DNA of 64,000 nt from Selaginella moellendorffii (lineage: Eukaryota; Plantae; Lycopodiophyta): the NCBI RefSeq assembly GCF_000143415.4, contig NW_003314341.1, positions 770,394-834,393 on the forward strand, read 5' to 3'. The position numbers and the translations under genes are program-made. Below, one piece after another: positions 19,756 through 55,936 of this stretch; position 1 is the first letter of the stretch; every line of letters starts with the position of its first letter. A model generated the notes under the pieces. That model was not told where the DNA came from. It saw only the letters and a list, made by a program, of their open reading frames with translations, and searched no databases.

Positions 19756-20654
19756 ATGGCGGGGAGCGAGGAAAGCAACCAGGCATCCCGCTACGTGAAG
19801 CTGGTCAAGGAGCAGGATGGACCCATGGAAGAGATCCTCGAGGGCGAGCTCAATCAGCCGGTTGTTGTCCCGCAGGTGAATTGCAGCTCCAGATCTGCTT
19901 GTCTTTCCACAGATCTCAAGTGGTTGTTCGATTTCCTTCCAGCTGCTCGTTCACCGTTGCCGCGAATGCGGCCAACCGCTACCCGAGAGCTACGAGCCGC
20001 CAGCGAACGAGCCGTGGACGACAGGGATCTGCGGCTGCGCCGACGACACAGACACTTGTAAGCCGATCCATCCCATCGGACGTCCACTCCGATTTCGATC
20101 TCAGATCAGACTTGTTGTTGAAAGCTTCGCGGCTGCAGGTTGCTTGGGCCTCTTCTGCCCGTGCGTGCTCTTCGGGCGCAACGTTGAGCGCATGAAAGAC
20201 AACGTGCCGTGGACAACGCCGTGCACTTGTCACGCCATCTTTGTCGAGGGCGGGATTGCTCTGGCGCTGGGCACGGCGGCGTTCCACGGGATCAACCCCC
20301 GGGCCGCCTTCCTCGTCGGCGAGGCTCTCCTCTTCCTCTGGTGGATGTGCGGCATCTACACGGGCCTCTTCCGCCAAGAGCTCCAGAAGAAATACCACCT
20401 CCAGGTAAATACCCCCAAGTCTTTGTTTGGAGGCTCAGGTTCTTGTCTGGGATGCGCTTGGGTTTGTGTAGGATTCACCCTGCGATCCTTGCATGGTGCA
20501 CTGCTGCATGCACTGGTGTGCTTTGTGCCAGGAGCACCGAGAAATGCACAGCCGCCTCTCGGACGATGTCGCCATGCCAATGACGCTCGTCAATCCACCG
20601 GCGCAGCAGCTCATGAACGCTTCCTCCGCCGCAGAGATCAAAGCTCAAGAGTGA
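19756..20654 (+). CDS. PLAC8 family / cell number regulator (CNR6-like)
   Basis: SRYVKL, EGELNQPVVVPQ, GLFCPCVLFGRNVE, YTGLFRQELQKKYHL, PCDPCMVHCCMHWCALCQEHREM. Confidence 0.9.
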
Positions 20655-20815
20655 GTGAGAGAGATGTTTAGGCTAGAGTTTTGAAGCCTTGAGCAACGAG
20701 CAACCAGCAGCGATTGCATTGTTAGCGTCAACTTTGTGTCACGGGCAATCTTATATGTTCAAGTCTTTCTTGTACAAGGAGGAGAAGAAAACAATCGAGA
20801 CGCAAGAAATAAATG

Positions 20816-21151
20816 TCATGCCTGTACAAAGATCGTCCTCGTCGACGTTTGCTTGGATGTTTGCTTGGAAGCTGTCGCGCTGCCGCTGAGGCTTGCGGCG
20901 CCAAATTGGCTCGCGGGCGTGGTGATCGTGATGGTGGAGAAGCGCTGCAAGCAAAGGGGGCAAAGGCACTCCCGACTGGACCATGCCCTAATGCACTGGA
21001 AGCAGAAAAAGTGGTCGCAGCAGTCGAGCTTCCCCCGCCCCGCGTCGGGCGTCTCCTCCAGGCAGATGCCGCACTCCATCTCCTCCTCCTCCTCCTCCTC
21101 GCCGCCGCTGCCGCCGCTGCCGCCGCGCTTCCTCTTGGGCTTTTTCTTCAT
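20816..21151 (-). CDS. Small C3HC4 RING-finger protein (copy 1 of a tandem triplet)
   Basis: MKKKPKRKR (NLS-like), then CGICLEE..RGKLDCCDHFFCFQCIRAWSSRECLCPLC. Intronless. Confidence 0.75.
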   Translation of the reverse strand: MKKKPKRKRGGSGGSGGEEEEEEEMECGICLEETPDAGRGKLDCCDHFFCFQCIRAWSSRECLCPLCLQRFSTITITTPASQFGAASLSGSATASKQTSKQTSTRTIFVQA

Positions 21152-21200
21152 CGCCACACAAAACACACACACAGACCTAATCATGGCGCTAGAAAAGCAG

Positions 21201-21356
21201 TGATGTAGCAGCGGAGCGTGCACAACAGAGGAGCCCGGGGCGTCGCCAATGGAGAGAGTAAGCATTTCAGCCCGGGCACCTCAGGCTGCAATCCCAATGT
21301 TGGTGGGCTTTCCATGTCCAGGAACAATGTTGTGTGTTCCCGACACCCAACCCACC
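21201..21356 (-). ncRNA. Putative two-hairpin H/ACA-like RNA, copy 1
   Basis: Hairpin 1 is GGTGGG..TGTCGGGAACA/TGTTCCTGGACA..CCCACC. Hairpin 2 is GCAGC..AGGTGCCCG/CGGGCTCCT..GCTGC, followed by T-ACA. Three copies are present. No perfect ANANNA H box. Confidence 0.45.
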
Positions 21357-21543
21357 CCGGCGCCCTACACGCCGGCCCCAACGTTGCTTTTAAAGGGGCA
21401 TCCGGCCACTCGTGGCTGGACATGTGTCAACTTTGGGGGATTGGTGGAGGACAATCTGGTTTAAGATATGGGACAAGTGCGGCCAAAAGTTCCCGCAATC
21501 TAGTAGTAGCCTAGGGTTCTTCGTGTATATGCGGTCGCCGCTA

Positions 21544-22032
21544 TCACAGGAAGGATTTTACTTGGTTCCGAGGTAATGCTGGAGTCTTGGATCGAGATCG
21601 CGGGCAGCTGCTGGATCTCAAGTGCTCCTCAAGCGCCGGAACACGGGCGCCATCCTCGTGGATTCTTCGCTTCGTGGGGGCTGGAAACGCCGGGCGACCT
21701 TCGAGCTCCTCACGGCTAGAGCCCGATGCTCGAGAGTCGGCAATGTTCTTTTCCACGGGCTTTGGCTTCACTTGAGACGGTGTGGATCAAGTGCTCTCCA
21801 AACGAATTAACTTTCGGGCTTCTCGCAAAGCCACCCATGACGCCGAGAGCGTGTTCAAGGCTATGGATGAGTCTCGGACGCCTTGCTTCTCACGGCTCAT
21901 GAGTCAAGGCTCGAGAGCGGCGGGTGGAAACGTGCGATCGCTTGTCCAAGGCAGCCAGGCGGACGAGAGATTGTCCTCGGAGCTTGCTCTGCCACTGTGG
22001 CTTGCTGTCCCCATGGCTGTGAGCCTCTTCAT
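21544..22032 (-). pseudogene. Diverged copy 2 of the RING unit (RING domain deleted)
   Basis: Shares the start context (GTGTGGCGATGAAG) and post-RING sequence with copy 1, but has no Cys/His RING motif and stops early. Confidence 0.5.
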
Positions 22033-22062
22033 CGCCACACAAAACACCCTAAAGCAGAAAGG

Positions 22063-22210
22063 AAATGTAGCAGGATGCGAAGGAGCCCGGGGCGTCGCCA
22101 ATGGAAAATAAGCATTTCAGCCGCGGGCACCTCAGCCTGCAATCTCAATCTTGGTGGGGGTTTTCTAATGTCCAAGAACAAGCGTGTGTTCCCGACATGG
22201 CGTCACCACC
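22063..22210 (-). ncRNA. Putative two-hairpin H/ACA-like RNA, copy 2
   Basis: Same stems as copy 1. The lower stem of hairpin 2 is GCAGG/CCTGC (compensatory versus GCAGC/GCTGC) and ends in T-ACA-TTT. Confidence 0.45.
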
Positions 22211-22407
22211 GCGGCACCAAAACTAAAAAGCTACAAGCGATAAATGGCTACCCCGACGCTGCTCAATTAAAACTGGGCATCCAGCCACTTGACATGTCTA
22301 ATTTAGGGGAGTGGTGGAGGTCTACTGAACAAGCGCGGGAAAGCAAAGCACCCACAAAATCCCCTACAGGTCGTAGCCTATAGGTCTCTCCCTTCTCTCT
22401 CCTATTG

Positions 22408-22790
22408 TCAAGTTCTCTCGGCGCTTGTACTGAAGGGACATTTCGCGCTGCACACTGTGGGGGACGTTGGATCCACGATCACAAGACGACCGGCACAGCG
22501 GCAAGAGAAATTCCAGTCTATGAGTCGGCTGGCCAGAGCTTTCAAGCCCAACATTGCTCGAGGCGGAGCAGTGAGTTCACAGATCATCCATGGCCACTGC
22601 AAGTATAGCAACGGAGAAGCCTTGTCCCTGCTCACCAGACGGCAAGGCTGGGGCGGTGTCCGTGCAAAGATTGTTCTTGAAGCCGTTGCGCTCCAAGATG
22701 TGACCGTGGAAAAGCAAAAGGGGCAAGGGGATTCCCATTCCCTAATGCACCGGAAGCAGTCGCTTCCTTCGCCACTCAAAACACACTCGA
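22408..22790 (-). pseudogene. Degenerate copy 3 of the RING unit
   Basis: Half-RING remnant CFRCIREWESPCPFCFSTVT..ATASRTIF, colinear with copy 1. The N-terminal half is missing. Confidence 0.55.
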
Positions 22791-22799
22791 GTAAGAAGG

Positions 22800-22951
22800 A
22801 AATGTAGCAGCATGGCATGGATAGGAGCCCGGGGCGTCGCCAATGGAAAATAAGCATTTCTGCCACGGGCACCTCAGCCTGCAATCTCACTCTTGGTGGG
22901 AGTTGGATGTCCAAGAACAAGTGTACGTTCCCAACACCGCCACACACCACC
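22800..22951 (-). ncRNA. Putative two-hairpin H/ACA-like RNA, copy 3
   Basis: Conserved core GATTGCAGGCTGAGGTGCCCG..GAAATGCTTATTTTCCATTGGCGACGCCCCGGGCTCCT..CTGCTACATTT. Confidence 0.4.
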
Positions 22952-23195
22952 GCGGCACTAAAACTAGAAACCTAGAAGTAAAAATTGCTACCCGACGCTG
23001 ATTATAAGAGGGCATCCAGCCACTGGTGGCAGGACACGTGTGCAATTTTGTGGACGAGCGAAAGAGGACAAATCTAGTCCGGTCCGTCCGAGGGACTGCC
23101 TTTGCTCCAGTGCTATAGTACTTGAGAGAAATAAGCATGTCAAGAGCTCGACAATGGCTCTTAAGGAGTGCGGCTTGGCGTTTTGGGCCGACTCC

Positions 23196-25567
23196 ATGGC
23201 CTCCCGTAATGGCGCCGGCAGATTTGTGAGAGACGAGTCCGCCGCTTTGAAGGTGCTGATTGATTGTATTTGTTTTTGTTGTCATGTGTGAAAGTTCCAT
23301 CGAATTCTGCGTATCTATATAGGAGGTTTGCAGCGAGCACGAGGACGCAAGCGAAGGGCGCGTGGTGGAATCGCTGAGCCATATTGGTGTGGAGAACAAA
23401 TGGTGCCTCTTTGTTCCCACTGGCTCGTTTCCTCCCGCTCGGGCAAAGGTAGGTTGCAGCCTTGCAGATTTTCTCAACAAGGTGTGTTTTGTGTGCACAG
23501 CATGCTGCCTTGTCCGTGGGACGTAGAATGTTCGTGCTGGGTGGCGTCTCGGCTGGCGGCATCCTCGATGATGTTCAGGTCTTGTTTAGTATCTTCTTAA
23601 GACGAGATGATCTGAATCCTAAGCTTGCACAGGTGTTTCACGCTGAGAGGGGTGTTTGGCTTCAGCTCGGCTGTGGATCTGTACCTTCACTCTACAGTCC
23701 ATCCAGATCTATACCCGTCGATGCTCGAGGGCCCCGTTGTGTTGGTCACTGCTTGGTAATGTTTCAAGTTCTAGAAGAGATTGAAAGCTGGCACTTATCA
23801 ATCAAGCTGCCAGGCGTTCTGGGAGACTAAACTTCTTGTAATTGGTGGACGGATCGAGCCGAAGTCAAAGAAACTTAGAGGTAACTTGTCCCTCAACCTT
23901 GTTCCGATTGATAACACACCTGTCCTGTTTTAGCTTTCGCTCTGGACTTGGAGTCGCAATCCTGGTCCGTACTTGCTCCCGAAGGAGAAGTTCCAGTAAC
24001 TTACTTTAAGATTTCCTTTGAAGGGCTGGGTCCAATTTACTGAAAAATATTTTTGTGTGCTCAGGTAGCACGCACGGGGCAGAGTGTAGTCCAAGTAGGC
24101 TCCTCGTTGATCATATTTGGTGGTGAGGACAGCAAGGGGCAGATGCTGAATGACTTGCATATACTAAACCTTAAGACGCTAGTCTGGCGTCCACCCAAGA
24201 CCAGGCAAGCATCGTTGATGATGAGAGAGTGCTTTCCATTCGTCTAACATAAGCGAGCATCTCGCAGTGGCTCAAAGCCTTCTCCTCGGAGAGGTCACTC
24301 TGCAGTTTGTTATAACGAACGATATATGCTAGTTTATGGAGGAAAGGCTCAGGGGAACTACTACAATGACATCTACGTTCTCGACTTGCAAAATGTGCAT
24401 TCAGTTTAGTTTACTCCAGTGCTTATGAAGATTTTGTCTTTCAGATGGAATGGAGCAAGGAGAAACCAAGAGGAACGGTGCCATCCCCTCGAGCAGGTCA
24501 TGCTGGAGTGATGGTTGGATCCAAGTGGTACATTGTTGGAGGTGAATACAAAGGAGGTGGTAAGTGTCATACTCTATACGTTTCAAATCCTTCTAAAATT
24601 CCCAAGGAATTGCCAGAGGTTTTAGAGACAATGGCATTCAACGTAGATTCCGGGAATTGGCAAACTGTGACTACTGTGCAGCCTGGTACTCCCCTTGCGA
24701 ACGACGTAGGCGCCTCACCCGGCTTTGAATATGATGCTTTAAACTTGCAATTTCGTGTGCTATGTAGGGCATTAGCCTCGTCAAGGTTCGCACCAAAGGA
24801 AAGGTCTTTTTGTTGGTGTTTGGAGGCCATGGTGCAATTCTAAGCAATCAGGTAAACGGATTGACCAAAATTCTTGTGCAAACGATAACGTCCGATTCAG
24901 ATCTTTGTCATGATGATCAGTAATAGCAGCAAAACTGTTCCTGTCGTGTCCAAGCGAGACGAGATCATCAAAGAGCTACATGACGACTTTTCCGCTTCTT
25001 CCTTGCCGTTCAGCTTTACAAGTGGCTCTTTGAATGCCAGAGGCTTGGATCAAAATCAACCACCACAGGGAGCAGACAATTCCGCTGTCGACGTAATTGA
25101 GGAGCTGGTTCGTGAATTTCCCGGTTTTGCTCCCAACCTTGTTTTTGTTGCATTACGTGCAGGAGTCCTCTGTGCCGAGTTTGTCCAGTGAAGGGGACAG
25201 TCTGTCCACGCGACCCGAGAACAAGCAGCAGCAACTCGAGCTGGCGGAGGCACTCACTCGAGCATTGACAGAGAAACAAGAGATTGAAAAGCGTTTGGAA
25301 GAAGCATTGATACTCGTAGAGGAGCTCAAATTAGAGAGGAAGGGGGCTTCTTCATTAAACGACCAGAGGAATACCATGGAAGAGGGCAGCGGCAGTAGCA
25401 AGGACAAGGACATTGATGAGGACGATTTGCAAGAACAGTTGCGAGAGTCACAACAGCAAATTGTGTTTGCAGTGAGGAAGCAAGCAGTGGCGGAGAGGAA
25501 GCTGTTGGGTGCCTTAAGAGAAAACAGAGAACTGAGAAAGAAACTGCTTCACCAGGTCCAGGTGTGA
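23196..25567 (+). CDS. Kelch-repeat plus coiled-coil protein (ACBP4/5-like kelch region; no ACB domain seen)
   Basis: HAALSVGRRMFVLGG, GPRCVGHCL, ARTGQSVVQVGSSLIIFGGED, PSPRRGHSA, PSPRAGHAGVMVGSKWYIVGG and a C-terminal coiled coil. Start codon uncertain. Confidence 0.8.
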
Positions 25568-30340: not shown

Positions 30341-32140
30341 ATGGCTGCAGTGGTGGTCACGTTTGCGCCGTGGCGGGCGAGGAGGGTGGTGGCGCAGCCG
30401 AGGAGACACCAGTGTTGCCGAGCCCAGGAGGAGCAACAACAAGGTGGGCAAGGACAAGGCAGCGATGGAGACGAGAAGCAGCAGTCTTCTGTGAAAATGG
30501 AGGTGTCTAGCTCGGTGATGCGGATGTTCCAAGGAAGAGACGATGGGGCTGCTGGTGGCGGGCTGATTGAAGCCAACGAGCGCAAGCGGAAGAAGAAGAA
30601 CAAGGAGATGGAGCAGTCGTATGAGATGATGGGCTTTGTGAGGGAGGAGCTGTTTGGCAAGACCGATATCTACATTCCAAGGCACGACAATCTCTTCCCT
30701 CTCCTGGTAGCAACTTTCGCAACCGTGTACGCTGACGACGACGAAGACGATGGCAACGACGATCGCTTCTCAATCTCGAGCAGCAGCAGCAGCAGCAGCA
30801 GCAGCAGTGGCTTGTCACGGTTGAAGGCGGTGGTGGACAGGGACGTGGCGCGATTCAAGGCCAGATCACTGCTAGCGTCGGGTTTGTTCTGCGACTTGAA
30901 TGGGGAGCCTCTCAACAGCGTCTCTCACACCGACATGAGGTTCGAGAGGTGGTTTGTGCTGTCCATGTACGTCAAGTTCAAGCTCTGGTGGAAAGGTCCA
31001 TCCGCGGCGGCGGAGCTCGCCCTCGACTACGCCTACAGGATGTCCAACTTCATCCTGGACGCTGACGGAGAGCTCGGCCGCGTCCTGGACACTGTGTCCG
31101 CGGGCTTGCCATCGCGGCGCCTCGCAGTCCGCTATGGAAGGCTCTGCCTGCTATCCTCACCCACCAGCATCAACGCCGCCACCCTCCAGAGCCAGCTCCA
31201 GAGCGAGCTGGACAAGAGAAACCGCGGCTGGGCTGCCTTTGTCCTCAACGCTGGCGCTGCGGGTGCTGGTGGTGGCGATCAAGTCGCATGCTTGCTCACA
31301 CACTGCACGTCCCTCATCTTCCTCCACCTCCCGGAGCGCCAGGCCGCCGCGATCTCCTACTTCATGCTAGCCTGGGCCGCCGCTAGCAGTGCCAACTTGT
31401 CAATGCCGTCACCCTCGCTGTGGCAGTGCGTGCCTCCTCTCGGCCTGCTAGCCGTCGTTGCCGGCGGTACGCTGCTGCGGAGGGCCGTGGCGTCGCTCTA
31501 CGGCGTCCTGTGGGCCGTGACGCCGCTCTTCGTGCTCCCGGTTCCTCAGCTCGGTGCCATCCCAACCTTTGTCTACTATCGTGGATGCCTGCCAAACCGG
31601 CGCTGCCTCTTCGACTTGTCCGCCGCCACATCCCTGCTGCAGCTCGCTCTCTCGGCCCTGCTCGTCGCTGCGGGCGCCTCCGCTGCCATGCCCGTCGTCG
31701 AGGTCTCGTCTCGGGCCTTTGCTCACTCGGGCCTGCTCACTTGGATGCTCAAGGAGCTCTCGTCGTCGGTTTGGCCGTGGGAAGGTGACGGAGACCCCGT
31801 GGTGAGCCTGAGTCCCTTGGCGCTCGGTGGCTTGCTGGGATTCAACTTCACGCTCGTCAGCTTGCTCCCTTGTGGCGTCTCCGAGGGTGGCCGCATGCTC
31901 ACCGCGTGCCTGGGAAGGCGCGCGTTTGGCTACGTCTCCGGCTTGACATTTGTTCTGGGTAGTGTGTCGCTCCTGGCCAGCGGCAACACCTGGCTTGGCC
32001 TCTTGTGGGCTTTGTCGTGTGCCAGCATGCCCGAAGACAGCTTTCAGAGGGACGAGGTGTCTGATCCAGGCTTGGCGAGGAAAGCCATGGCACTTCTTCT
32101 CACTCTTGCTGCTCTTGCTTCGCTTGCTCCACACTGGTAG
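30341..32140 (+). CDS. EGY3-like M50-family membrane protein lacking HExxH (probably plastid-targeted), intronless
   Basis: 599-aa ORF with a transit-like N-terminus and LPNRRCLFDL, PLALGGLLG..LLPCGVSEGGR, DEVSDPG motifs, as in EGY3. Multiple TM segments. Confidence 0.75.
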   Translation: MAAVVVTFAPWRARRVVAQPRRHQCCRAQEEQQQGGQGQGSDGDEKQQSSVKMEVSSSVMRMFQGRDDGAAGGGLIEANERKRKKKNKEMEQSYEMMGFVREELFGKTDIYIPRHDNLFPLLVATFATVYADDDEDDGNDDRFSISSSSSSSSSSSGLSRLKAVVDRDVARFKARSLLASGLFCDLNGEPLNSVSHTDMRFERWFVLSMYVKFKLWWKGPSAAAELALDYAYRMSNFILDADGELGRVLDTVSAGLPSRRLAVRYGRLCLLSSPTSINAATLQSQLQSELDKRNRGWAAFVLNAGAAGAGGGDQVACLLTHCTSLIFLHLPERQAAAISYFMLAWAAASSANLSMPSPSLWQCVPPLGLLAVVAGGTLLRRAVASLYGVLWAVTPLFVLPVPQLGAIPTFVYYRGCLPNRRCLFDLSAATSLLQLALSALLVAAGASAAMPVVEVSSRAFAHSGLLTWMLKELSSSVWPWEGDGDPVVSLSPLALGGLLGFNFTLVSLLPCGVSEGGRMLTACLGRRAFGYVSGLTFVLGSVSLLASGNTWLGLLWALSCASMPEDSFQRDEVSDPGLARKAMALLLTLAALASLAPHW

Positions 32141-34384: not shown

Positions 34385-36853
34385 TTAGGCCGCCGCCAGT
34401 ACGTAAGGCGCGTTATGCATTGGATCGAGTTCCAGAGCCGCGGATCTTGCAATGCGGGCCTCGGCCTGCTGCGCGTTTCGGTTTGCTGCGAGCAAGCAAA
34501 TCCAATCTCGAGCTTCCGGCTCAAAGGGCATGTTGGCGATGAGATCTTGGCCCTGCTCCAAGTGGCCGGCCCTGCCCAGGAGATCCACAAGACAGCCATA
34601 GTGCTGCTTGGCGGGCTTCAAGCCGTGATCCATGAGCATGGAACGGATGTACGATAGTCCGGTTGTGAACTGGCCGCCGTGGCTGCAGCCCAAGAGCATG
34701 GAGGTGAGCACGGCGTCGTCGGGTTTGAGACCCTCGAGAACCATCTCCCGAAAGAGAGCGTCTGCCTCTCTGGAGCGACCGTTGTGTGTGTAGGACGCGA
34801 GGATGGCGCTCCAGGGTGACGACCGTCGGTCCGGCATCCTATCAAACAGGGTGTGCGCGAGCTTCAAACGGGCAGCCTTGCCGAGGCCGATGGTCATGGC
34901 GTTCCACGTCATGAAGTCCCGCTCCGGCATCGCATTGAGCACGAGCATCGACTGCTCCAGCTCGCCAGTCTTTGTATGTGCAACCAGCATCGCGTTCCAC
35001 GACACAAGATTCCACTTGGGCATGGAGTGGAAGATCCCCGTGGCTTCGTCGAGATGCCCATTCTGAGCATACGTCGACAAGAAGGCAGTCCAAGTCACCA
35101 CCGTCTGGAACGGCATCGCATCAAACACGGCACTCACGCAACCAAATTGCCCCGCACGCCCGTACGCCGCCATCATCTCCACGTAGGAATCCACACTGCG
35201 ATCCGGCATCGCATCAAACACCTGCCGCGCATGCAGCAGATGCCCGTTCTGGGCAAGTACGGCGAGGATTATGTTCCACGAATTGAGGTTGTGGTGAGGC
35301 ATTCTCCGGAAAAAGCCGACGGCCTCGCTGCAGGTTCCATGCTGTGCATAGCCCGCAAGCAGTGCGTTCCACGACACAATGTCGCGCTCCTCCATGCAAT
35401 CAAACACGCGCTGTGCCTCCGGCAGGCAGCCATTACGAGCATAGGCCGAGACCAGGGCGTTGAGCGACGCAAGGCTTCGCTCGGGCATGGAGTCAAACAC
35501 GCGCCTCGCCTCGTCCAGTTGCCCGTTCTGGGCATATGCAGCGAGCATGGCATTACAGGCAACCACGTTCCGGAGAGGCATCCCATCGTACAAACACCGG
35601 GCCTCTTCGACATCCCCGTGGTCCGCGTACGCCGTCAGCATGGCCGTCCACGATACAACGTCGCGCTCAGCCATGCGCCCAAACAGCGCCCGCGCCTCGA
35701 AAATATGCCCGGTCTTGGCATATGCTGTCAGCATGACGTTCCAAGAAACGAGGCTCCTTTGCGGCATGACGCTCACGATGGCCTGCGCAGACTCCACGTC
35801 CAGAACTCCCGCGTAAGCTGACAGGAGTGAGTTCCACGACACCAGGTTCCTCTCGGGCATCAAATGAAACAGGCTGGACGCTTGATCTAAATGCCCACTT
35901 CGGGCACTTGCCGCAAGCATTGAGTTCCACGAGACAAGGTCCCTAAAGGGCATGAAGCGATCAAAAACCTCTCGGGCCCTGTCAACATGCCCGCTTCTGG
36001 CGCAGCTGAGGATTGCATTCCAGGTGACCATGTTCTTGGCGGGCATCGCAGCGAGCACCCTGTCCACTTCGTCCCAGTCGCCATGCCTCACCAGCAGCAC
36101 AAGCATTGCATTGCAAGCCACCGTGTTGTGCTCTGGCATCTCCTGGACGAAGATCGCCTTGGCGCCCTCCAGGCCCAGAGACGGGCAGCACAGCAGTGTC
36201 GTCCACGACACAATGTCGCGGGCAGGCATCCGGTTGACGAAGCTGCGGGCTTGCTCCAGATGCCTGGTATTTGCAACTGCGTACAGCATCGTGTTCCACA
36301 CAGCAAGATCATGCTCGGGCATCTTGCAGAAGACTTCCTGTGCTTGCTCGAAGCGGCCGGAGCGGGTGTAGGCGGCAAGGAGGTCTGCCCATGCAAAGAT
36401 GTCACGGTCTGGCATGGAATCAAAGACGCTCTTGGCCTTGTCAACATCCCCAAGCTTGGTATACACTGCCTGGAGTGATTTCCACGAGAAGGCATCTGGA
36501 TGTGGGATCTGAGCAAACACCCGATGCGCTTCCTCGGCACTCCCACAGCGCCCAAACATCTGGACGAGAAGGTTGCACACGTAGGAATCGGCCGAGAGCT
36601 CCGTGGTGGCTGCTGCCAGCTTGAGGAGCTCCCGCGCCTCCGGGAGGACATTGCAGGCTTGGACGAGGCGAATGCAGTCTTGCCTGGTGCTTGCCCTAAC
36701 ACACTCTCGTTTAGGGCGGCGGCAGCTGATGGGCGATGTCCTGGACGATGGATTTCTTTCTTGGATGCCGGAGTCTCCGGCTGCTGCTGATGCTGGTAAG
36801 AGGGAGTTTTGCGAGCGCTGCCTCAAGGCGGCGGTGCTGTGCGTGTGTGGCAT
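34385..36853 (-). CDS. PLS-class pentatricopeptide repeat protein with truncated E domain, intronless
   Basis: About 20 tandem short repeats of the type VSWNAML.AYA..G.L.EA..VFD.MP, then [21 protein letters not shown]. Ends at APYVLAAA* with no DYW. Start uncertain (in-frame ATGs at 36853, 36868, 36964). Confidence 0.9.
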
Positions 36854-37622
36854 GATCGGGGAGCCCATCCACAACAGGATCCGTGTCACCGTGCTCCAAA
36901 ATCCCGAGGAGAAGGAGCACCACTTGGGCTCTGTCCGGGTTGCAATGCTGGGCCTCAAGAACATTGAGGTGATCGTTGTTCCGCAGATCAACACGGGCAC
37001 TTCTTATCGGGTGCGTCCCAAGGTAGCGGGCTCCAACCGTTGCATGCGTAATGGCAGTCCCGCTGAACAGGACGAGCTTGTCGTCTGTCAGCAGCACGAC
37101 AGGACCCAACACGACTGCTGGTTCTACGGCTGTGCTACCATGGATCCATATCTCCCACGGACAGCACCCTCCTGGATCAACCTCTCGCCAAACGCAGCTC
37201 TCATCTTCCCCAGCGACAGGGCCCAGGACTTGCACGCAATGTTTCCGGGCGTTAAGTTTGGCCATCGATCGGGTGTAGATGGAGGGGAGCAAGGCAAGGA
37301 AAGTGGCGAAGCATGCCGAGCTCCCGATCAGATAATTGTCATAGATGGTACGTGGTCCAAGGCCAGGCGGCTTTACATGGAGAACCCGTGGCTGTTCCAG
37401 CTGCCGCAGTACAAGTTGCCCGCCAGTTTCAAGAGCATGTACGAGTTCGTGAGGCCCGAGCCCCGGCCTGGCTGCATGTCAACTCTCGAGGGAATCGTCT
37501 ATGCACTCAAGGTCTTTGAGCCAGAGGCAACGGCGCTGGAGTCGCTGCTAGACGTTTTTGAGGCCATGATCCAGAAGCAGCGGGAGTACATGCTAATGAA
37601 AACTCACAAACATGGGGAATAG
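36729..37622 (+). CDS. DTW-domain tRNA-uridine aminocarboxypropyltransferase (DTWD2/TapT-like)
   Basis: CERCLK...CVC zinc site, VLQNPEE, ALIFPS, IIVIDGTWSKARRLY, VRPEP..CMSTLEGI. Confidence 0.88.
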   Translation: MGDVLDDGFLSWMPESPAAADAGKREFCERCLKAAVLCVCGMIGEPIHNRIRVTVLQNPEEKEHHLGSVRVAMLGLKNIEVIVVPQINTGTSYRVRPKVAGSNRCMRNGSPAEQDELVVCQQHDRTQHDCWFYGCATMDPYLPRTAPSWINLSPNAALIFPSDRAQDLHAMFPGVKFGHRSGVDGGEQGKESGEACRAPDQIIVIDGTWSKARRLYMENPWLFQLPQYKLPASFKSMYEFVRPEPRPGCMSTLEGIVYALKVFEPEATALESLLDVFEAMIQKQREYMLMKTHKHGE

Positions 37623-37683: not shown

Positions 37684-40600
37684 TGTAGCGGCCAATAACA
37701 AGCCTGTATAACAAAGTGAGGCAGAACATGTGGAGGGATGACTTGGCAAGGGGATCTGAGGGAGGGGTTTGTTACAGAGGATCGGGCGGCGGATCAACAG
37801 AGACTTCTTGGGATGCAGCAGGGCAGTGATAAAGGAGGTGGTGGGAGCTAGGGCAAGGGGGAGGATTGGCTTGATGACGAGCAAGGGCGATCAACAGTAA
37901 GGGCTTTGACCTGGTGTGGACTCCAGTAAGCCTTGCCCGGGCTTACGCCCATTTTATGGTGGAGATGAGGGGCACCTCATCACATCTGGGCTAGGCATAC
38001 TGGAGTCTATATGAATTTTCCTTTTCAATTCCATTTCTGGCATGACTAAAATTTTGAGCATGAGGGCTTGTGCAGTAGCGTGGAGGACACGTATGGCCAA
38101 AAGGACTTTCCTGGCTAGGACAGCCAGTGTGACCAAGAGGTTTGGTCATAAGGCATGGCATCCAAAGGTTGGAGCTGCCATACATCCAGCTAGGGGCTGA
38201 GGAATGAGCTGAGCCGGGGAGGCCAGTGGTGGGGGGATCTTGGTGATCTACTCGTGGTGCTAGTGACGTGCTTGGGCCATGGCACCTTTCTCGTCTGGCA
38301 TGAACTGGAAGCATGGCATCTCCGCTGTCACGAGGACGGGCATCTGGCTATGAAGGGGACTCGGATGCTCCACTCCGCTCAGGGAAAGGGAGGATGCGTC
38401 TGACCGGCTGTTCGAGGAACCACGAGTGGAGGCGAGCACTGAGAGGCTGCTGGAGAATGCTGACGTTGCACTCTTGAAGGACCCCCAGGTCACATGGCAA
38501 TTAGCAGTAGCAGGAAATGCTACAATGAGAAAGGAGCTTTTCTGCCTAGAAGTTTCATCATTGGCTCACGTCAAGTATCCTATATACAAAATGGGAGAAG
38601 ACTTTGAGCTCTATCTGGAGATTTTCAAGTGTGCAGCACATAACAACAAAGTGGCAGGGAGAGAGATTATACATGGCTCTGGAAGGGGAAGCACAACAAT
38701 TTTTTATGGCCCATCTGAGTGGAGTTGAAGAGGAATCTTGGGAGGAGGCAATTCAACGTGGCCACTACCGCCTGCTGAACGTGCCTTCCTCACGATGAGG
38801 GATCGCAAATTCAAGAGAGGTGAGTCTGTGCAACAGTATTGGGCAGCATTGATTCGGGTAGCTAGGATGCTAAACAGTGACACAGCAACAGCTGAGGGCA
38901 TGGCAAAGCAAACGTTCTATATCAAAAATGAGGTAGGAGACCATTAAGACTACAAGGGGTAACGCGTGGAAGCGTCTCCATTTTATCGGTAGTTTAAGCG
39001 TGGTAGTTAATACACATTTGCATTGAACCGTCCTTCATCTTCACAAGCAAGACCGGAGCACCAAATGGAGACTTACTTGGCTGAATAAATCCAAAGTCAA
39101 GTAACTCCTTGACTTGTCGTTGAACTTCTTGCTCCTCTGCATAACTTAACCGAAATAGATGTCGGTAAATTGGTCGCGTCCCCGGCTCTAATGTAATCTC
39201 ATGCTCCACACCTCGTAACGGAGGCAATCCATGAGGAAGTTCAAATGGAAAAACATCAGAAAACTCATCCAGTACATCCCGTATTGCTACTTTTTCCCCA
39301 CACGTGCCTTGGTCCCCCAAGTCACAAACAAACAACAAGTAACTCGAAAGTGTTTTTCCATTATGACAAGCCTGCTTCAAAGATGTAGCAGAGAGCATAA
39401 CAACTGGTGGTTGAACGCCCTCGCCAAACCACACATCTTTAATGCCACCATACTCCAACGAAATATACTTAATACTCCACTTTATCTCTGGATCCACCTT
39501 CACCAACCATGACATCTCGAAAATGAGATCCACACGATGGATATCCGCGAGATTAAGTGTGGTTTTGCCAACCAACACTTCCAGCCCCTCGACATAAGCA
39601 TCAAAATGTTGAGTAGAGGTAGCTGCACCTTCCACTGTGTATGGAAGAACGCCGCGTGTGACCAGGCCATGCTCCACAACAAACTTTGCCAAAACAAAGT
39701 TGTCATCGCTCCCACTATCCAGTAAAATCCGCACTAGATCGCCACGGAACACACCCTCCAGCATTAAAGCTAATTCACGCGTATCCTCGAGTTCCATCTT
39801 GTTCCACACACAGTTGAGCTAACGAGCAACGATCGAAAGTCGCTTCCTCCAACCGGAATGGTTGTTCTCCTCATCCTCACGCTGCAAAGTTTGCAACTTT
39901 TTAGTATCTGACTTACCGTGAAAAGAAGATTGGCCATTCTTCTTGTCCTGTTGCTTGTTCTTCAATTGCGGACAATCAGCCTTGTAGTGTCCAAGTTCTC
40001 CGCAATGATGACAACCCTGTCTATAATTCTTCACAAAGAACTTCTGCTTCTTGGACCCCTTTGCATCCGAAGTAGTCACCACCGACTTCAACTTGTGATG
40101 CTTGTTCCCATCCTTGTGTCCACGGCGATCATCACGACAATTCTCGATAGGACTCCGGGAACACTTGTGAGACTTGTGCTTGTCATTGTCAAGTTGATGA
40201 GCTGCATCAAAGAGCTCCTCCAAACTCTTTGTAGGCTGAGAATGACGCAAGTGTTGCCGCATGCTCTCACTATGTAGGCCATCAATGAAGTAGGACTTGT
40301 TCTGATCTGGATCCTTGGTTAGAACACGACTAATCAAGCGAGTAAGCTTCTCAATATAGTCCCCAAGTGTCATTTTCCCTTGCTGGAAATGTCGAAGTCT
40401 GTACAAGCATTCTCCACATCATAATGAGGGGCAAAATGTAAACGAAAAGCAGCCTCAAACTCATCCATGGTAGACACTGGTGGTTTTTTATCTACAACAC
40501 GGGACTCCTCAAGCCAATTCCACCATTGAAGACCCGCATCACGCAAAACCATCAGAATAGCCACTAAAGCCTCTACATCCGGAGTTCCCCTAGTAGTCAA

Positions 40601-41495
40601 GAACTTCTTCACTTTGGCTAGCCAAGCGAGACACTCGTCCACACCACTATCACCGGAAAAAGTTGGAATCTTGAGTTGATCTACCAAAGAAGGCTTACTT
40701 GGAGTGCAGCCTCGAGCACCTCAACACGCCCACGCATGGTATCCATCATGCCATGCATCTCATTTTGCATCTCTTGCTGATTTTGATTAAGGGCTCGTAG
40801 CTCATAAACCACATCTTGAATGGTCCAAATCTTCGCAATTTCGTCGGCACCATCGTCGGCACCACCATCAACAATAGGATTCCAACGTTCAGCTTGGTCG
40901 GCCATTGCAACCAACTCCTCTGATACCAATGTTATGATCCGGTGCAAAAAAGACAAAGATTTAGTTGCCCTAGACTATGTTACGCCACCTCTTGAGGTTC
41001 CTCACCACCCAAAATGGGGTGGTTTAGGGTTTACCGAGCTACCTCAAAAGCTCCACTGCACCGCCACTCTTCTATGAGCCCTAGGGTAGGTTAGTCCTTT
41101 ACCCTAACATGCATTAATATACACTTGAGCCTCCCTTTGACTGATGTTGACCACGTGGTGCCATTATTTTATTTTATTTTATTAAATTTTATTTTAGGAC
41201 AGCTGTAGTGGCCGAGCCCGTATAACAAAGTGAGGAGAACACGTGGAGGGATGACTTGGCAAGGAGATCTGATGTGGCAGGGAGGGGTTTGTTATAGAGG
41301 ATCGGGCGGCGGATCAACAGAGACTTCTTGGGATCCAGCAGAGCAGCGATAAAGGAGGTGGCGGGAGCTAGGGCAAGGGGGAGGATTGGCTTGGGAATGG
41401 CGTGACGAGCAAGGGCGATCAACAGTAAGGGCTTTGACCTGGTGTGGACTCCAGTAAGCCTCACCCGGGCTTACGCCCATTTTAGAACCGCTACA
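37684..41495 (+). mobile_element. Degenerate LTR retrotransposon bounded by ~280-290 bp direct repeats (37684-37957 and 41204-41495)
   Basis: Near-identical direct repeats with outer termini TGTAGCGG...CCGCTACA. Gag-like remnants on the + strand at about 38430-38950. The TSD is imperfect (TTGT vs TCGT). Confidence 0.7.
38994..41150 (-). mobile_element. Nested truncated Ty3/gypsy element (LTR part, PBS, gag, protease, start of RT)
   Basis: PBS TGGTATCAGAG (40918-40928, minus) next to an LTR end at 40930. Gag IPTFSG..WL, zinc knuckle CHHCGELGHYKADC, protease LLDSGS, RT IQPSKSPFGAPVLLV. Frameshift, stop codon and 3' truncation. Confidence 0.9.
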
Positions 41496-43863: not shown

Positions 43864-46800
43864 ATGGCGGATGGCTGGAGCTCCGATGGGCACAAGCGGC
43901 GTGGGAGGGCCAAGAAGGCAAAAGCCGATCCAACGTCTCCACGTCCTGGCACCCTTGACGCGTTCCTGCGCCCTAGGGTTTCTTCAGCTCGAGTTGAAAG
44001 TGATGCAGTTGTAGCGAGCCCAGGAGTCGACAGCAATGGGGGTTCTTCACCAAATGCAAGCCAAGCGGAGGTGAAGACTCGCGATTCTCTGGAGAGCACA
44101 CAGATGGAGGATGGCGCAAAGAAGGCAACGTCTCCCCTGCGTCCTAGGGTTTCTCCAACTCAAGGTGAAAGCGATCCGAGCCCAGGAATCGAAGGTTCTT
44201 CACCGAATGCCAGCCAAGCGGAGGTGAAGATTCGCGATTCGATGGAGAGCACACAGATCGACAGCGTGGGCAATGAGAATGCAATGGAAAATGGTAGGCT
44301 GGACTGGATTATCATACCAAGTTTGTTCTACCTCAACATTTCTTGCGCTCGCAGGTTTTTATCCTCTTTGGTCCACGAGGTTGAGGAAAAGGAAGTCCAA
44401 TGTTGTCGATGCCGAGGAACCTGTCAATACCGAGGAACCTGTCGATTCTAAGGAACCAGATGAACCAATTAGTTCTCCTCCAGTGCGGGCTTCCAAAAAG
44501 CGTCACAAGAAAAAGAAGTCCCGCGCAAAAACTAGAAAGGAAGAAATTGTGGACCGGGATTCATTGTCGTGTGCTTACGATCTGCGCAAGGAAGCACGAA
44601 TGGCCACGGAGGTAAAATCACCTTTGTTGCCTCTTTGTTCTTCCAATTTACTTAAGATCTGCAGGAATTTAATCTCTTGAGCGCTGGAAAACCTCTTCAT
44701 CCGTTTTTTCAGCGCAACAAAAAACAAGAGAGAAGTGAGGACTCGCCGATAAAGCGGGGCTCATTCTGGGACCCGTGTTTGCCATTTCACGTACTTCAAG
44801 ATACCATGGTAAGAAAGAGTCTTCTGAGCTATCACTGAACCTCTTTTCATGTTGTCTTGCAGAATGTCGACGCGGACATAAACTGGAACTCTTTCCAGCG
44901 TTCTTGTTTTGTAACATCGGCATCACAGGTTACTTCGAGTGATGACCATGACCATGGTTACTTAATTTCAAAAGACCAGAAGCTTGCTCCATCGCAACGC
45001 TTCGTATCTGATGCAGCTACCCTGGATGAAAGTTTGGAGAAAGTTCATGACTTTTTAAAGGTAGTGCTTTTATCTTTTAGAGGCTTCTACTGTAACGCTT
45101 TTTTGTGTTAGGAGTCCGGTCATAAACACTTGTCAGTGGCAAGTTTGAAGGAGAAGTATGCGGCATTGTGTTTTTTATTAGTCACTTTTAACTATGACTT
45201 GCAGATATGCGTGGTATCTAGCTAGAAATACTGATGGAGTTACTACCACGGCGAACCCTTCGTGGACATGTTTGTACCAGCCGCACTCCTCTAAACAGGT
45301 GTCTAGTTCAAGTTAAAATCTTTGCGTGCCTGATGTTCCTGCTTCTTAGTTGTGTGGAAACAGGGACTCCGTGAGTTCCTTAAGCGAGTGGCTCTCCAGA
45401 TGGAAACAGAAAATATTGTCTAGAAAGCAGGCATCATTGGACAGCGATAGAGACAGCGATGGAGACTACGAGATTGAGGATGAAGATTTACGGGACGGTC
45501 TACAAAATACCGTGCTTGTGACTGGTCCTGTCGGGGTACGTTTGATGTTGTGTTTGCTGGGATTTAAGGTGAAGCATTCTTTCAGTGTGGTAAATCTGCA
45601 GCCGTCTATGCATGCGCCAGGGAGCACGGGTTTAATGTTATTGAGGTAATGTGGTATATGTGCGAACTTCCTCTTTACCCTCTTTTCTTCTTGTAGATAA
45701 ACTCTTCAGACAGTCGCGCTGGAGCAACTATCAAGAAAAGATTTGGAGAAGCAACTCAATCTGAAGCAGTGATATGGTTTTCCGATTTGTTTTTGTTTGG
45801 TCTACAGTTCTAACGTGAATTTATTATAGCTCCGATCAAGATGGAAGAAAACCGACAATTATCTTGTTTGAAGAAATTGACACGGTATTTGAGGAGGATA
45901 AGGGATTTTTGGCGGCAATTGGCCAATTAGCAAAGTCCTCGAAACGCCCCATGGTTCTTACTAGCAACAGTACGATTTCACCGATATTTCTATGTCTCTC
46001 ATATCCGCATGTTTTGCAGGGCGTCAACCACTATTGCCACGCATGAGAAAAACTGTCATTGACTTCATAAAGCCCACCATGGACGATTTGCTAGTCCACG
46101 CATGCTTGGTAAGGTAACTTTACTAAAATATTGATGTTGAATAATTTATGTGCAGGTGTGTGCTTCAAATGGTCTATTTGGAGAGCCTTGGATCATGAAA
46201 CGCATTGTAGGATCTTGTCACCAGGACTTGCGAAAGCTAATGATGCTGCTTCAGTTTTGGGGACAGGGTGCTCTACCGCCGAGCGCAGAGCTAGAAGCGG
46301 ACCAGTCCTCAAGCATGAAGCGAAACAGTCATGAAAGAAGAATATTGCTTCCACGAGCTGCTTGGTGGGAGGATTCAGACGCCGAGTACTGCTTATTGCC
46401 GGAGTTGGTTCCTCTGAGCTTCCCTTGCTCTCAGTCATACTTAGTAGCCGGGAAATTATCAGAAGCAGTTCAGAAAGCTGAAAAAATTGCCACCTTGCAT
46501 GCTGCAAAGGCAGCTGAAGAAGATGAGTCTCTACGGGCTGCTCGCAGGTCAAAAAGCTCGAAAAGGCTGGCTAAGAAAGTGGAGGCTGAATTACTTGATA
46601 CCATGGTGGTGGAAGCGGAAGGAAAACACTGTGGACCAGCTGCCATGATTAAGACTTGTGGTGCTGGGAGGCGGAAAAGACCACGAAAGACTACGAAAAG
46701 ACTGGAATGGAAGGAAGCGCGGAATAACACCGGCTTTATTAAAGATCTGGCAGAAGAAGCAGAAGGATTGATATATTGTACCACTTGTGCGACCGAAGAA

Positions 46801-51573: not shown

Positions 51574-54423
51574 GTATGTATGCTTATCCTGGTTGTTTCC
51601 AGCTATGAGCACAAAGGCAAGATTAGAATCTCCTGACAAGATAAAGCTATGTTCCTCAAGTAGCTATGGTACGAGATACTAAGATAATGAGTACTGTGGG
51701 TGAGAAAATTGATACATTGGCTAAAAAGTGGCAGTCCTAGGACTGGGGCAGATGCCAAAATACTTCCTCAGCATCTAGTTCATAAACTCATGAACTTCCC
51801 TTGCACTGGGTCATGTGGAACTTTTAATATCTCACCACTTTGAAGAAAAGAGGCATTTGGTTATCCAAATACCGCCTCTAGAATGTGGACGGTCCTGATA
51901 TCAAAATGTTTGATGGTTGCATCCACTCAAACTTGGGTTGAGCGCACTTTTGCTTTAAGCCTTCATTCACCAAGAACTTTGGACAGGAATTTCTTTCTAT
52001 TGTTCTCATGGTTATGGTTTGGATTTTTAATTGTGCATATAATTTGAACATACATGTTTTGACGTGATTCTGTCAAAGTATAGTTATGAAACCGGAAACT
52101 CCTCAAAGTCCGAGTCACTCTTGAAGTGATTCAAAAGCATCTTCATTTGCATTTGCGTCTTAAAGCAATGCCTTGAGTGTACTGCCTTGAGTGTAGCAGC
52201 AGAAGATGCTGACCGAGGCATCTATTGCCATCGCACTGCTCACATCCTTCTCTAGGATAGAAAACATCCCCCAACCAATATGTCCGAGCTAGGGAAAATA
52301 ATTATTAAGTCTTGTCTAGAGTTGCCAAGAATAGAGGACACAAAGTTTCGATACCCCAAAGCAATAGTCATTCCCAAGCTGTTGCTCTGAAAGAGCTCTC
52401 CATGGATAACTACCTCTCCCCAAGACCAGGCATTTGTAAAACCCTGGATAAAGGAAAGCTGCAATGCCTCTATCTGCTTGCTTGAAAATACCCTCTTCAG
52501 AAACAATTCCCACAGATCCGAAACTGTGGCTTCTTGGATCCCCCAAGCTCAAACTGAATAGTAAAATCAGATGCATCAACTCTCAGCTTCCTCAGAAAGG
52601 ATTTGACCACCTCCACTCATCGAAGGCCTGCCAATGAGAGCCTCTCTCACCCTGGACATTCCTGGTGAGTTGTATCAGGTTCCTTCCAAGCTCGCCGTCC
52701 ATAAGGGCCAATGCCAGTATCTTACGGGCTGTGGATCAGCATCCTGGGAGCTAGGCCAATGCCGCCAGAAGATGTAATTAAGAGTGCTCATTTGAATTCT
52801 AGGTTTAGTAGTGGCCATAATTGGCAATGGGGCTGCTTTTTTCCCAAGCGAGAATGGCAAGAATGATTATGTGGAGTATGGAATCGCTCATGCCCAGATG
52901 CTTGCCAGGGAAATCAATCATATGGTAAGAGCTTCTTGTATTTCACTTGTTCAATCCTGTCTGGAAAATGCCAATTGTTGACAAGAATACTGTGCTGTTT
53001 CAGATGCATACCAGTGGGTGCAAATTAAATCAGTTTGTGATCTTAGCCATGGAGATTTCAGGGTAAGGAAAGCCTGCCACACTCAGGAAATCAAGAGATC
53101 AATCTTGAGCTCAAAGTATATGCCTTAGGATGTAGTGGGAGCATATCTTGAGTAGCCTTTCCTTTTTCCTTTCTGTTAGAACATTTATACTAACTCTACC
53201 CATTGTTGAAATGCTAGGGTTGGTAAAGGCTTAAAATTGTACTATTTGGTTCATTGAATGTATAAGCCTTATGCTGCAACATGATTTGCTTAAATATATT
53301 AAACTTCACAGAAAGTAAGCAAATGGCAAATTGCAATTCAAGACTTATGTAGTGCATTTGAAATTTGGAGCCAAACTCTAAGCTTGTTGCATTACAAAAG
53401 AAGGGTTTAATACACACTTAATATCCCTTATGAGCACCAACTCCCCATATTCAACTCTTGTATGCAAAACGGTGTCAAAAGAGGTTTGACATAATTTCAG
53501 CATGCCAGTGGCCTAACCCGAGAAATAGGGTATTCTACCGACTAGAGCAGCATGGAGCTTAGGCTTAGATCTAAGCCGAATGCAAAACAAGGAGTGACAC
53601 AGCCTAGTGGGAGCTAAACTAATATCTCAAGTGGTCAGCCATGTATAAGACATAAATCCCTAAGCCCTAAAGTGGAGTAGAAAGTAGTGGTCAAAGTGGA
53701 AGTCCAGGGAAGTTTTGAGCTGCTGTCTCACCAGGGCCACAAGTGAAAGCTATGGCTAGACAAAGAGGGGACCACTTAGTTAGAAATTCACTCACAAGAG
53801 TCTCTCAAACCTAACCAACAAACAAAGTAAGAGCATCGCTGCCTAGCTCTCCTGTGAAGTCAACAGAATCTCAACTCAAGAGCAAGACTTCTCTTAGTCA
53901 CCAGCCTGACTGCAAGCCCCAGCCACTAGTGCTGCAACAATGTATGCTGTAGCAGATAGAAGAAGGAATGCTGCAGTGGGATCCCTGAGCCTTTGTAGAG
54001 GCTCTACGAGATGCCACTCAGGACGAAGTGCAGCTCCACCAAGACATCCTCACTGCAGAGGTATGGCACCAAGAGACAAACCCCTTGGGGGAATCCTTGG
54101 CCCCATCTGTCGCAAATGTGACTTCGGGTATCGAAAGTTACTTATCGGCTAGTCCTTTCGGATATTCTTTTCTTACTGCCATGATAGCAGGAGGTCGGTA
54201 TTGCTGGACCCATTATTAGTTTCCCACTTGTGTTAGTTGAGAAACTGGTCAATGACCGTGTACTTAGACCAGATAAACATAAGGTAGGAACCCTATGTGT
54301 TTCTTGCTAAGCATACTCGGCTTGGTTTGAGAAACTCCTGTTATTGGCTTGCACTTGCTAGTATCAAGAACCCCTGCGATATTGAGATTGGTCCCTCAAT
54401 ATCGCTAGATGATAGCTTACCAT

Positions 54424-55936
54424 TGTGAGACACAAAATCCCTAGGCCCCCAAAGTGGAGCCAAAAGGTCGAGAGCGGGAGTGGAACTCCCAACAAAGTGC
54501 TCGAGGAACGAGCACGAGGTGAGGCTCCAAAAAGGGACCCCAAAGGGACCAACACATGACACGTGGAAGTGTTTGAGATGGGCCCAAGATGGAGTTTGAG
54601 ATGGAGTCCGAGATGGACCCGAGTTGGAGTCTGAGATGGACCCGAGTTGGAGTCCGAGGTGGAGTCCGAGATGGAGTCCGAGATGGACCCGAGATGGAGT
54701 CTGAGATGGAGTCCGAGATGGAACTGAGATGGAGTCCGAGATGGACCCGAGATGGAGTCTGAGATGGAGTCCGAGATGGAACTGAGATGGAGTCCGAGAT
54801 GGACCCGAGATGGAGTCCGAAGTCAAGACCGAGACCGGGACCGAGACAGAGACCGAGATCGGGACCGAGACCGAGACCGAGGCCGAGTCTGAGTCTGAGT
54901 CTGAGTCTGAGTCTGAGTCTGAGTCCAAGATCAAGTCTAAGAGGGTGAAAGCCCAAAGCGTTCGTCTCCCAGACCCTGGGGGGTTTGGTGAGCTCCAAAA
55001 GTATAGTAGGGGGAGGACTGTAGTGGAGCCAATTTGGCCAGGAAAGGCCAATTTGGCCCAGGAAGGCTGTACCCAGTGTTGGGTGATGAGCTGCCCACTG
55101 GGAAGTCCAAGACTAGAGTGAACATGGACCGACAAGCGGGGTAGCTTGGTGAAGTGTTCAAGAGCCGGCTCTAGTTCCCCCGAGAGATTGATTGGCCGAT
55201 GCTCCTAGTCCAAGTGTGGGTGGCACTACCTACTTGGATACCTGGCATGGCTCAACGGAACCTCGCTCTAAGCCCATGGCTAGAGCACCTAAAGGCGAAA
55301 GGTGGGGACAGTACCCATGAGGCTTGCGTAAGGCCACGGTGTTCCGAAATGTTGTCCCAAAGTCCCAAACGGTGAAAGGGAGGAGGAGCAGTCCTCTAGT
55401 GTAGTGACCAAGGATACGGTCACATGGTGAGGAAGTCCCAAAGGATAGTGGGACTTAGAGGTCAGGCCTGCGGGCCTTGATTTAGTGGCAGTGTTGGCGA
55501 ACACGACCATGGACAAAAAGGGACTTGGTGGAGACTGGAAAAGAGTTGTCGGGGAAGGCTATTCCCCATGTCTGCGGGCATCTTAAGGATGCTAAGGGGT
55601 AGATCTGGGATGATTTCTCATGAACGGATGGCCCAGTCTTTGAGAGATGGGACTAGGATGCAGGTGGCATTAGACCACCGGTGTGACCAGGGTGAATGGG
55701 CATGGCCTTAGCATAACGGGCCGATATGTCGGTGGTACCTTGGGGTGTCGGTCATGGGATCGGACACGTAGAGCACTTGGACCAAGTGCAAAGGTTGAGT
55801 GGCATGGATGCTATTCTCGGGGCTAGCAAGCCCCAAATCCTGAATGGGACTTATGGAGGTTGTGAGTGAGACTCCTCCTAGTGGTTGGAGGTGTGGTTAA
55901 GTGACTAAAGTAGAATAGAAAATTTAGTAGCTTACA
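54424..55936 (+). mobile_element. Solo-like long LTR (about 1.5 kb), inverted relative to the neighbouring element
   Basis: TGTGAGACAC...GCTTACA is the reverse complement of 56954-58768. The flanks (ACCAT / GGCGA) are not a TSD. Confidence 0.85.
54585..54930 (+). repeat. Tandem GAGATG/GAGTCC/GAGACC/GAGTCT array inside the LTR
   Basis: Directly visible 6-, 11- and 12-mer tandem units. Confidence 0.9.

Follow-up and report, generated by a model that had tools for sequence, protein, structure and literature searches.

A threefold repeated element on the minus strand was analysed in a 64,000-nucleotide (nt) stretch of the Selaginella moellendorffii genome (NCBI RefSeq assembly GCF_000143415.4, contig NW_003314341.1, positions 770,394 to 834,393 of the forward strand), hereafter the window, which is numbered from its first letter. 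The window is eukaryotic, with introns and a land-plant-type gene content, and the array lies in a gap of ~2.4 kb between a PLAC8-family gene (open reading frame (ORF) at 20144-20671) on one side and a Kelch-repeat gene (Pfam match at 24445-24843, with candidate earlier exons from ~23170) on the other. Both flanking genes are on the plus strand; all three copies of the element and their ORF units are on the minus strand. The copies were present at 21201-21356, 22063-22210 and 22800-22951, where an original prediction, made from the letters alone, had placed them; it had read them as a family of box H/ACA RNAs or, alternatively, as structured 5' leaders of RING-finger genes. Copy 3 adjoins the apparent 5' end of the opposite-strand Kelch-repeat gene (candidate first exon at ~23170-23270 on the plus strand, in the region 23001-23300), and the two may have a short bidirectional promoter region in common.

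Read 5' to 3' on the minus strand, every unit has the same order of blocks, namely a 15-mer, a TATA-like tract, a spacer, hairpin 1, a 12-nt hinge, hairpin 2, the 9-mer CTGCTACAT, a variable stretch and a start-codon block (Table 1). The 15-mer, AGTGGCYGGATGCCC, is invariant and precedes each TATA-like tract, with three matches in the window against 0.25 expected. The tracts themselves, which had been noted earlier, are A/T-rich upstream of every copy and are not the same in sequence between copies. The spacer from the tract to hairpin 1 measures 30–55 nt, with copy 1 being ~21 nt short, and the variable stretch between CTGCTACAT and the start-codon block 20–45 nt. The repeat thus defined runs from ~60 nt upstream of the TATA-like tract to the start codon and covers ~210–290 bp, so that the ~150 nt initially given for the element was too short.

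Table 1. Positions of the conserved blocks and ORFs in the three units of the array (window coordinates).
Feature	Position	Strand	Remarks
Copy 1 upstream box, AGTGGCCGGATGCCC	21396..21410	-	directly 5' of TATA-like tract 21388-21394
Copy 1 hairpin 1	21302..21356	-	predicted outer stem GGUGG/CCACC, inner stem 11-12 bp
Copy 1 core	21229..21296	-	CCATTGG palindrome and conserved upstream ATG; 25-mer at 21229-21253; 92-94% identity vs 71-73% in flanks
Copy 1 9-mer CTGCTACAT	21203..21211	-	3' strand of predicted hairpin-2 lower stem and ACA (21204-21206); fits Inr-like YYANWYY
Copy 1 start-codon block, GTGTTTTGTGTGGCGATG	21149..21166	-	ATG at 21149-21151
Copy 1 ORF, 111 aa	20816..21151	-	basic/acidic N-terminus and intact C3HC4 RING
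Copy 2 upstream box	22275..22289	-	followed by TATA-like tract 22265-22272
Copy 2 hairpin 1	22153..22210	-	predicted fold
Copy 2 core	22081..22147	-	25-mer and identity comparison
Copy 2 CTGCTACAT	22065..22073	-	ACA at 22066-22068
Copy 2 start-codon block	22030..22047	-	ORF behind it of 42 codons, without RING
Copy 3 upstream box	23010..23024	-	followed by TATA-like tract 23001-23007
Copy 3 hairpin 1	22895..22951	-	predicted fold
Copy 3 core	22823..22889	-	25-mer and identity comparison
Copy 3 CTGCTACAT	22802..22810	-	ACA at 22803-22805
Copy 3 start-codon block	22767..22784	-	ATG lost (AAG)
Copy 3 RING remnant, C-terminal half	22712..22759	-	internal deletions; 74% over 57 nt to 20949-21005; BLASTP E 3e-5; no Pfam domain

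In blastn comparisons against the window, copies 2 and 3 shared 81% identity over 265 nt, copies 1 and 2 85% over 121 nt and copies 1 and 3 72% over 235 nt. A 25-mer beginning TCCATTGGCGAC and finishing GGGCTCCT is identical in all three copies and unique to them in the 64 kb, where no match would be expected by chance. No fourth copy was detected in the window, either with nhmmer profiles or in scans for the 25-mer, the 15-mer and the 18-nt start-codon block with mismatches allowed, and exact searches for the core gave no match in metagenome contigs (two patterns), prokaryote genome contigs or viral contigs, these being collections without plant genomes.

The ORF of copy 1 encodes a complete C3HC4 RING finger (Pfam zf-RING_2 and zf-C3HC4). 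Its relatives are plant-type proteins of 650–930 amino acids (aa) in which a PHD finger follows an N-terminal RING; for instance, it shares 53% aa identity with residues 69–139 of P0004, a RING+PHD protein of 765 aa. The ORF thus belongs to a large RING(+PHD) family, in which a representative search gave no relative above 62% identity and a word search with the RING ORF returned one relative; the ORF itself was not present in the protein collection searched. The queries used in these searches covered 20816-21148, without the initiator codon, the true ORF being 20816-21151. The copy 1 ORF is accordingly a RING-only N-terminal fragment of the plant RING+PHD family.

The three units differ greatly in what remains of this ORF, in line with the heavy decay described in the original prediction: copy 1 has it intact, copy 3 has lost half of it and copy 2 has none. 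Copy 3 lacks the start codon and retains only the second half of the RING, and no similarity to the corresponding parts of copies 1 or 3 could be detected in the sequence that follows copy 2. The earlier statement that each copy lies just upstream of a RING ORF or its remnant therefore holds for copies 1 and 3 and not for copy 2. The upstream region, the leader and the start-codon block are common to all three units, and ORF homology is limited to copies 1 and 3. In addition, the alignment of copies 1 and 2 continues farther upstream, and there is a weak match between units 2 and 3 at the 3' end. Since the ORF remnant in copy 3, the 3' ends of units 2 and 3 and the upstream regions of copies 1 and 2 all align, the comparison indicates that whole units of ~680–880 bp were probably duplicated in tandem, with deletions occurring afterwards. 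The conserved unit reaches the start of the ORF, as the start-codon block lies within a 22-nt stretch that is 100% identical between copy 1 (21145-21166) and copy 2 (22026-22047). The locus thereby resembles other tandem duplicates with decayed pseudogenes, having three head-to-tail units with promoter, leader, ORF remnants and 3' ends in common, one of them intact and two degraded. It differs from them in the very uneven decay, a core of ~68 nt, the 9-mer and the 18-mer having been spared amid scrambled sequence.

The core, of 67–68 nt, takes in the final 7 nt of the hinge together with the 5' half, the apical loop and the 3' upper stem of hairpin 2. Counted over ungapped columns, its identity is 94% between copies 1 and 2, 92% between copies 1 and 3 and 97% between copies 2 and 3, as compared with 73%, 71% and 78%, respectively, in the remaining aligned repeat (Fisher test, p ~2e-4 for each pair). 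The claim that the non-coding core is better conserved than its surroundings was therefore upheld (92–97% vs 71–78% in the flanks). Immediately beyond it, the 6–16 nt that separate the core from CTGCTACAT are scrambled, with 0–35% identity. Copies 2 and 3 group together to the exclusion of copy 1 in both the core and the flanks, and the slowdown is similar across all three pairs, for which reasons uniform constraint fits better than a single gene-conversion event, although the preference is a weak one with only 2–5 differences per pair. On every branch the core has evolved ~4–7 times more slowly than the flanks, an indication that selection still acts on the leader, or on a DNA site within it, in the two copies without RING.

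A coding explanation for the core was considered and rejected, because a 1-nt and a 2-nt indel (net +1) shift the frame and the peptides read from the conserved ATG differ between copies. In copy 1 this ATG (21263-21265, in the apical loop of hairpin 2) is in frame with the RING ORF with no stop between, giving a 149-aa ORF at 20816-21265, and a second in-frame upstream ATG occurs at 21184. In copy 2 the same ATG starts a 28-codon ORF whose TGA overlaps the main ATG.

The proposal that each copy can fold into two hairpins followed by ACA was borne out in the predictions for all three. The hairpin-hinge-hairpin-tail layout appeared in the consensus fold and in every single-sequence fold, with a hinge of 12 nt. 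Against column-shuffled controls, the consensus-structure energy gave a z value of -5.0 on the minus strand and -3.1 on the plus strand. Dividing the consensus energy by the mean single-sequence energy gave a structure conservation index of 0.84, compared with 0.59 in the shuffles. The strand bias is strong in hairpin 1, which alone gave z values of -6.3 on the minus strand and -2.2 on the plus strand, as opposed to -2.7 on either strand for hairpin 2. The single-sequence fold z values were -3.0, -1.3 and -1.3 for copies 1, 2 and 3, respectively. All four one-sided changes in the stem of hairpin 1 keep pairing through G-U, and the stems are otherwise invariant; variation falls in unpaired columns, with the loops of hairpin 1 and the internal loops being variable and containing indels. 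Because the structure conservation of hairpin 1 is strand-specific, a minus-strand RNA structure is plausible, and a hairpin 1 formed in minus-strand RNA is reasonably supported by these predictions. Hairpin 2 may be either an RNA structure or a DNA palindrome. The covariation previously described for its lower stem was found in copies 1 (GCAGC/GCTGC) and 2 (GCAGG/CCTGC) and breaks down in copy 3, where GCAGG faces GCTGC with a G-G mismatch. Over the whole structure, covariation among the three sequences was not significant, as 99 of 500 shuffles reached the observed level.

The lack of strand bias in hairpin 2 bears on a rather unlikely explanation in which the element acts as DNA only, either as a cluster of transcription-factor sites serving the RING units or the Kelch and PLAC8 genes, or as an island kept by conversion, with the hairpins arising as by-products of palindromes. 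Equal scores on the two strands agree with this, as do the candidate sites present (the CCATTGG palindrome of CCAAT type, GC-rich palindromes and an Inr-like CTACAT) and the fit of CTACATY to the initiator (Inr) consensus YYANWYY in all copies. The invariant part of hairpin 2 includes a long apical loop that pairing does not explain, a spacer of varying length, as found between the core and CTGCTACAT, is usual for spaced DNA motifs, and the array is situated directly upstream of the Kelch-repeat gene. A function in DNA, however, does not predict the strand bias of hairpin 1 or the G-U-compatible changes in its stem, and a slowdown that is about equal in the three pairs is unlike the outcome of one conversion event.

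Box H/ACA RNAs are defined by two hairpins, an ANANNA hinge box, an ACA located 3 nt from the 3' end and a target uridine 14–16 nt from the box (PMC9241379). The element resembles small nucleolar RNAs (snoRNAs) or small RNAs specific to Cajal bodies (scaRNAs) of this type in having ~150 nt in the part first described, a predicted hairpin-hinge-hairpin layout and an ACA 1 nt past the closing stem of hairpin 2. Closer examination revealed that other defining features fail. A regular-expression scan for ANANNA came up empty in all three hinges, as the original prediction had conceded in calling its H box imperfect, and in copy 3 the motif occurs nowhere. In the pocket of hairpin 2, every copy has just 3 nt (CUG) on the 5' strand, with 16, 6 and 11 nt on the 3' strand, and the distance from the end of the upper stem to ACA is 22, 12 and 17 nt in copies 1, 2 and 3, respectively, instead of the 14–16 nt required. 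The apical loop and upper stem are invariant, and conservation is lowest in the would-be guide strands (0–35% identity in the 3' strand), which is the reverse of what is seen in paralogous guide RNAs; the internal-loop strands thus do differ between copies as had been reported. Furthermore, the conserved blocks run 45–70 nt past the ACA as far as the start codon.

Comparison with Rfam, which had been put forward as a check, returned no family for the element: no match reached the gathering score of Rfam 15 anywhere in the 64-kb window, and within 20900-23300 only three chance-level matches were obtained at E values up to 10, none of them to H/ACA families. At the thresholds used, known snoRNAs, small nuclear RNAs (snRNAs), signal recognition particle RNA, U3, ribozymes (including hammerhead and retrozyme types) and riboswitches were ruled out, and a tRNA scan of the window found none. 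The H/ACA assignment was therefore rejected despite the two-hairpin layout, in view of the missing H box, the wrong and variable pocket, the scrambled guide strands, the conservation past ACA and the absence of an Rfam match.

Plant snRNA promoters carry an upstream sequence element (USE), RTCCCACATCG, located ~35–40 or 25 bp upstream of the TATA box. With up to two mismatches, the sole USE match was ~80 nt upstream of the copy 1 TATA tract, with none at copies 2 and 3, and the count in the window was that expected by chance. An snRNA-type promoter was accordingly rejected, no USE being conserved and copies 2 and 3 containing TTTT within the apical loop of hairpin 2. Telomerase RNA was likewise rejected, with no conserved template-like permutation of CCCTAAA seen by eye and no USE.

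These observations also bear on the broader idea that each copy is a separate gene, driven by its own TATA box, for a structured RNA of ~150–220 nt, belonging to an undescribed class or to a very atypical H/ACA-like one, with the RING ORFs as bystanders. Such a gene appears unlikely. It would agree with the constraint on the core regardless of the state of the ORF, with the conserved two-hairpin layout and its stronger signal on the minus strand, with the closing of hairpin 2 by the invariant CUGCUACAU and with the TATA-like box belonging to each copy. The hinges without an H box, the incorrect and unconserved pocket geometry, the putative guide strands being the most variable part, the failure of Rfam to give a match at E up to 10 and the lack of a conserved USE of plant snRNA type all argue against it; the TTTT that copies 2 and 3 carry in the loop of hairpin 2 speaks against polymerase III, conservation extends to the start codon, and copy 1 departs by ~25 nt from copies 2 and 3 in how far hairpin 1 lies from TATA. 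In a more specific form, itself doubtful, an RNA of ~150–220 nt made by RNA polymerase II (Pol II), with two hairpins and an invariant apical loop of 23–25 nt, would have been kept by selection instead of the RING ORF since an old triplication, or the dead copies would serve as regulatory decoy or leader RNAs. If an independent RNA were made here, it would constitute a family of structured RNAs that is specific to the lineage and has no counterpart in Rfam.

A further explanation derives the module from a transposon, as the TATA-to-end part of a long terminal repeat (LTR) with its primer-binding site and leader, into which a RING gene fragment was captured. The end of the core on the minus strand reads CCA, T and TGGCGACGCCCC, like an LTR end followed by a tRNA primer-binding site, and this CA, 1-nt spacer and TGG arrangement lies within the fully conserved 25-mer. 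The order of TATA, structured R/U5-like hairpins, leader and ORF is also that of a captured U3-R-U5 leader carrying a fragment of a host gene, and a purine-rich tract occurs upstream of copy 2. The element differs from such a leader in having neither homologous internal regions nor target-site duplications: apart from the RING remnant, the stretches between copies are not homologous, unlike the internal regions of one family, and clear TG...CA ends were likewise missing. If the motif were the complement of a tRNA 3' end, it would place a G at the invariant C61, a point reasoned from the sequence alone. The LTRs of a gypsy-like element in the window are unrelated to the repeat, showing no similarity to it, and weak nhmmer matches there were to gag and at chance level. 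A transposon origin is considered improbable. The gypsy-like element is an LTR retrotransposon of ~3.7 kb at 37759-41484, with LTRs of ~200 bp (37759-37956 and 41279-41484) that are 96–98% identical; its internal ORF (38994-39809, minus strand) has a gag/protease-like look and gave no Pfam match at E 0.001.

The reading preferred here is that each copy of the element comprises a TATA-type Pol II promoter together with a structured 5' leader, belonging to a truncated RING gene that was triplicated, a tentative assignment with a probability of roughly 0.45. The structured leader, offered as the alternative in the original prediction, fits the anatomy of the repeat, and the conservation of structure is significant and stronger on the minus strand. 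By this account a small gene unit would have been duplicated in tandem twice, the element corresponding to the promoter-proximal part and transcribed 5' leader of each unit, at the start of which stand the invariant 15-mer and TATA-like box. Pol II would initiate ~30 nt downstream of this box on the minus strand, and the transcript would run through hairpin 1, the 12-nt hinge, hairpin 2, the CTGCTACAT block and the start-codon block. The pair of stable hairpins could then work in cis together with the conserved upstream AUG in the loop of hairpin 2, limiting or gating scanning and translation or RNA stability, or a factor could be bound by the invariant apical loop containing CCAUUGGCGAC. The transcription start, the polymerase and the cis-regulatory role are thus all putative.

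In several respects the element resembles known structured 5' untranslated region (UTR) elements of eukaryotic mRNAs, in which cap-proximal hairpins and upstream AUGs gate scanning. These include its position between a TATA-type promoter and a start codon, its stable hairpins, its conserved upstream AUG and its conservation at the nucleotide rather than the peptide level. It is unlike them in being conserved where the ORF has been lost and in containing no recognised motif or site for a known binding factor, the element being known here from sequence alone.

A number of observations weigh against the promoter and leader assignment. Copies 2 and 3 have kept the core, although the leader of a dead ORF should lose constraint; the assignment does not account for the conservation of the core, the 9-mer and the start-codon block despite the loss of RING, and the earlier point that the element is constrained independently of the RING ORF is a valid one. 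A leader of ~200–250 nt with a folding energy of -48 to -65 kcal/mol and several upstream AUGs would be expected to translate the RING ORF poorly. As hairpin 2 has no strand bias, its conservation may act at the DNA level, for example through CCAAT-type or GC-rich palindromes, and repeated gene conversion limited to the core may also have taken place. In addition, the fold z values of copies 2 and 3 are modest and three paralogues give no statistical power for covariation.

Were the leader assignment correct, the locus would be an ordinary tandem gene array with one oddity, a short structured stretch that has not decayed where coding function was lost, and would add a compact candidate to the few cis-regulatory RNA or DNA elements described in lycophytes. 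The analysis also removes a false H/ACA snoRNA candidate.

Elsewhere, the window encodes a DTW-domain gene, a MutS domain V exon, a phosphomannose isomerase and an FGGY kinase, along with an intronless PPR protein of 871 aa at 34385-37000. Taken as mechanical ORFs, the minus-strand PPR ORF shares ~400 nt with the plus-strand DTW-domain ORF (36603-37622); the two genes (34385-37622) stand head to head with very small or no intergenic space. An intronless 599-aa ORF with an ATG start at 30341-32140 (plus strand) has a long hydrophobic C-terminal half and matched no Pfam family at E 0.001. A 68-nt segment occurs twice at 44041-44261, the two being 91% identical and 153 bp apart. Long low-complexity short tandem repeats fill 54300-58650, giving (DS)n, (LG)n and (SV)n runs in ORFs on both strands, and from 58 kb onwards the GC skew is strongly negative (-0.19 to -0.28).

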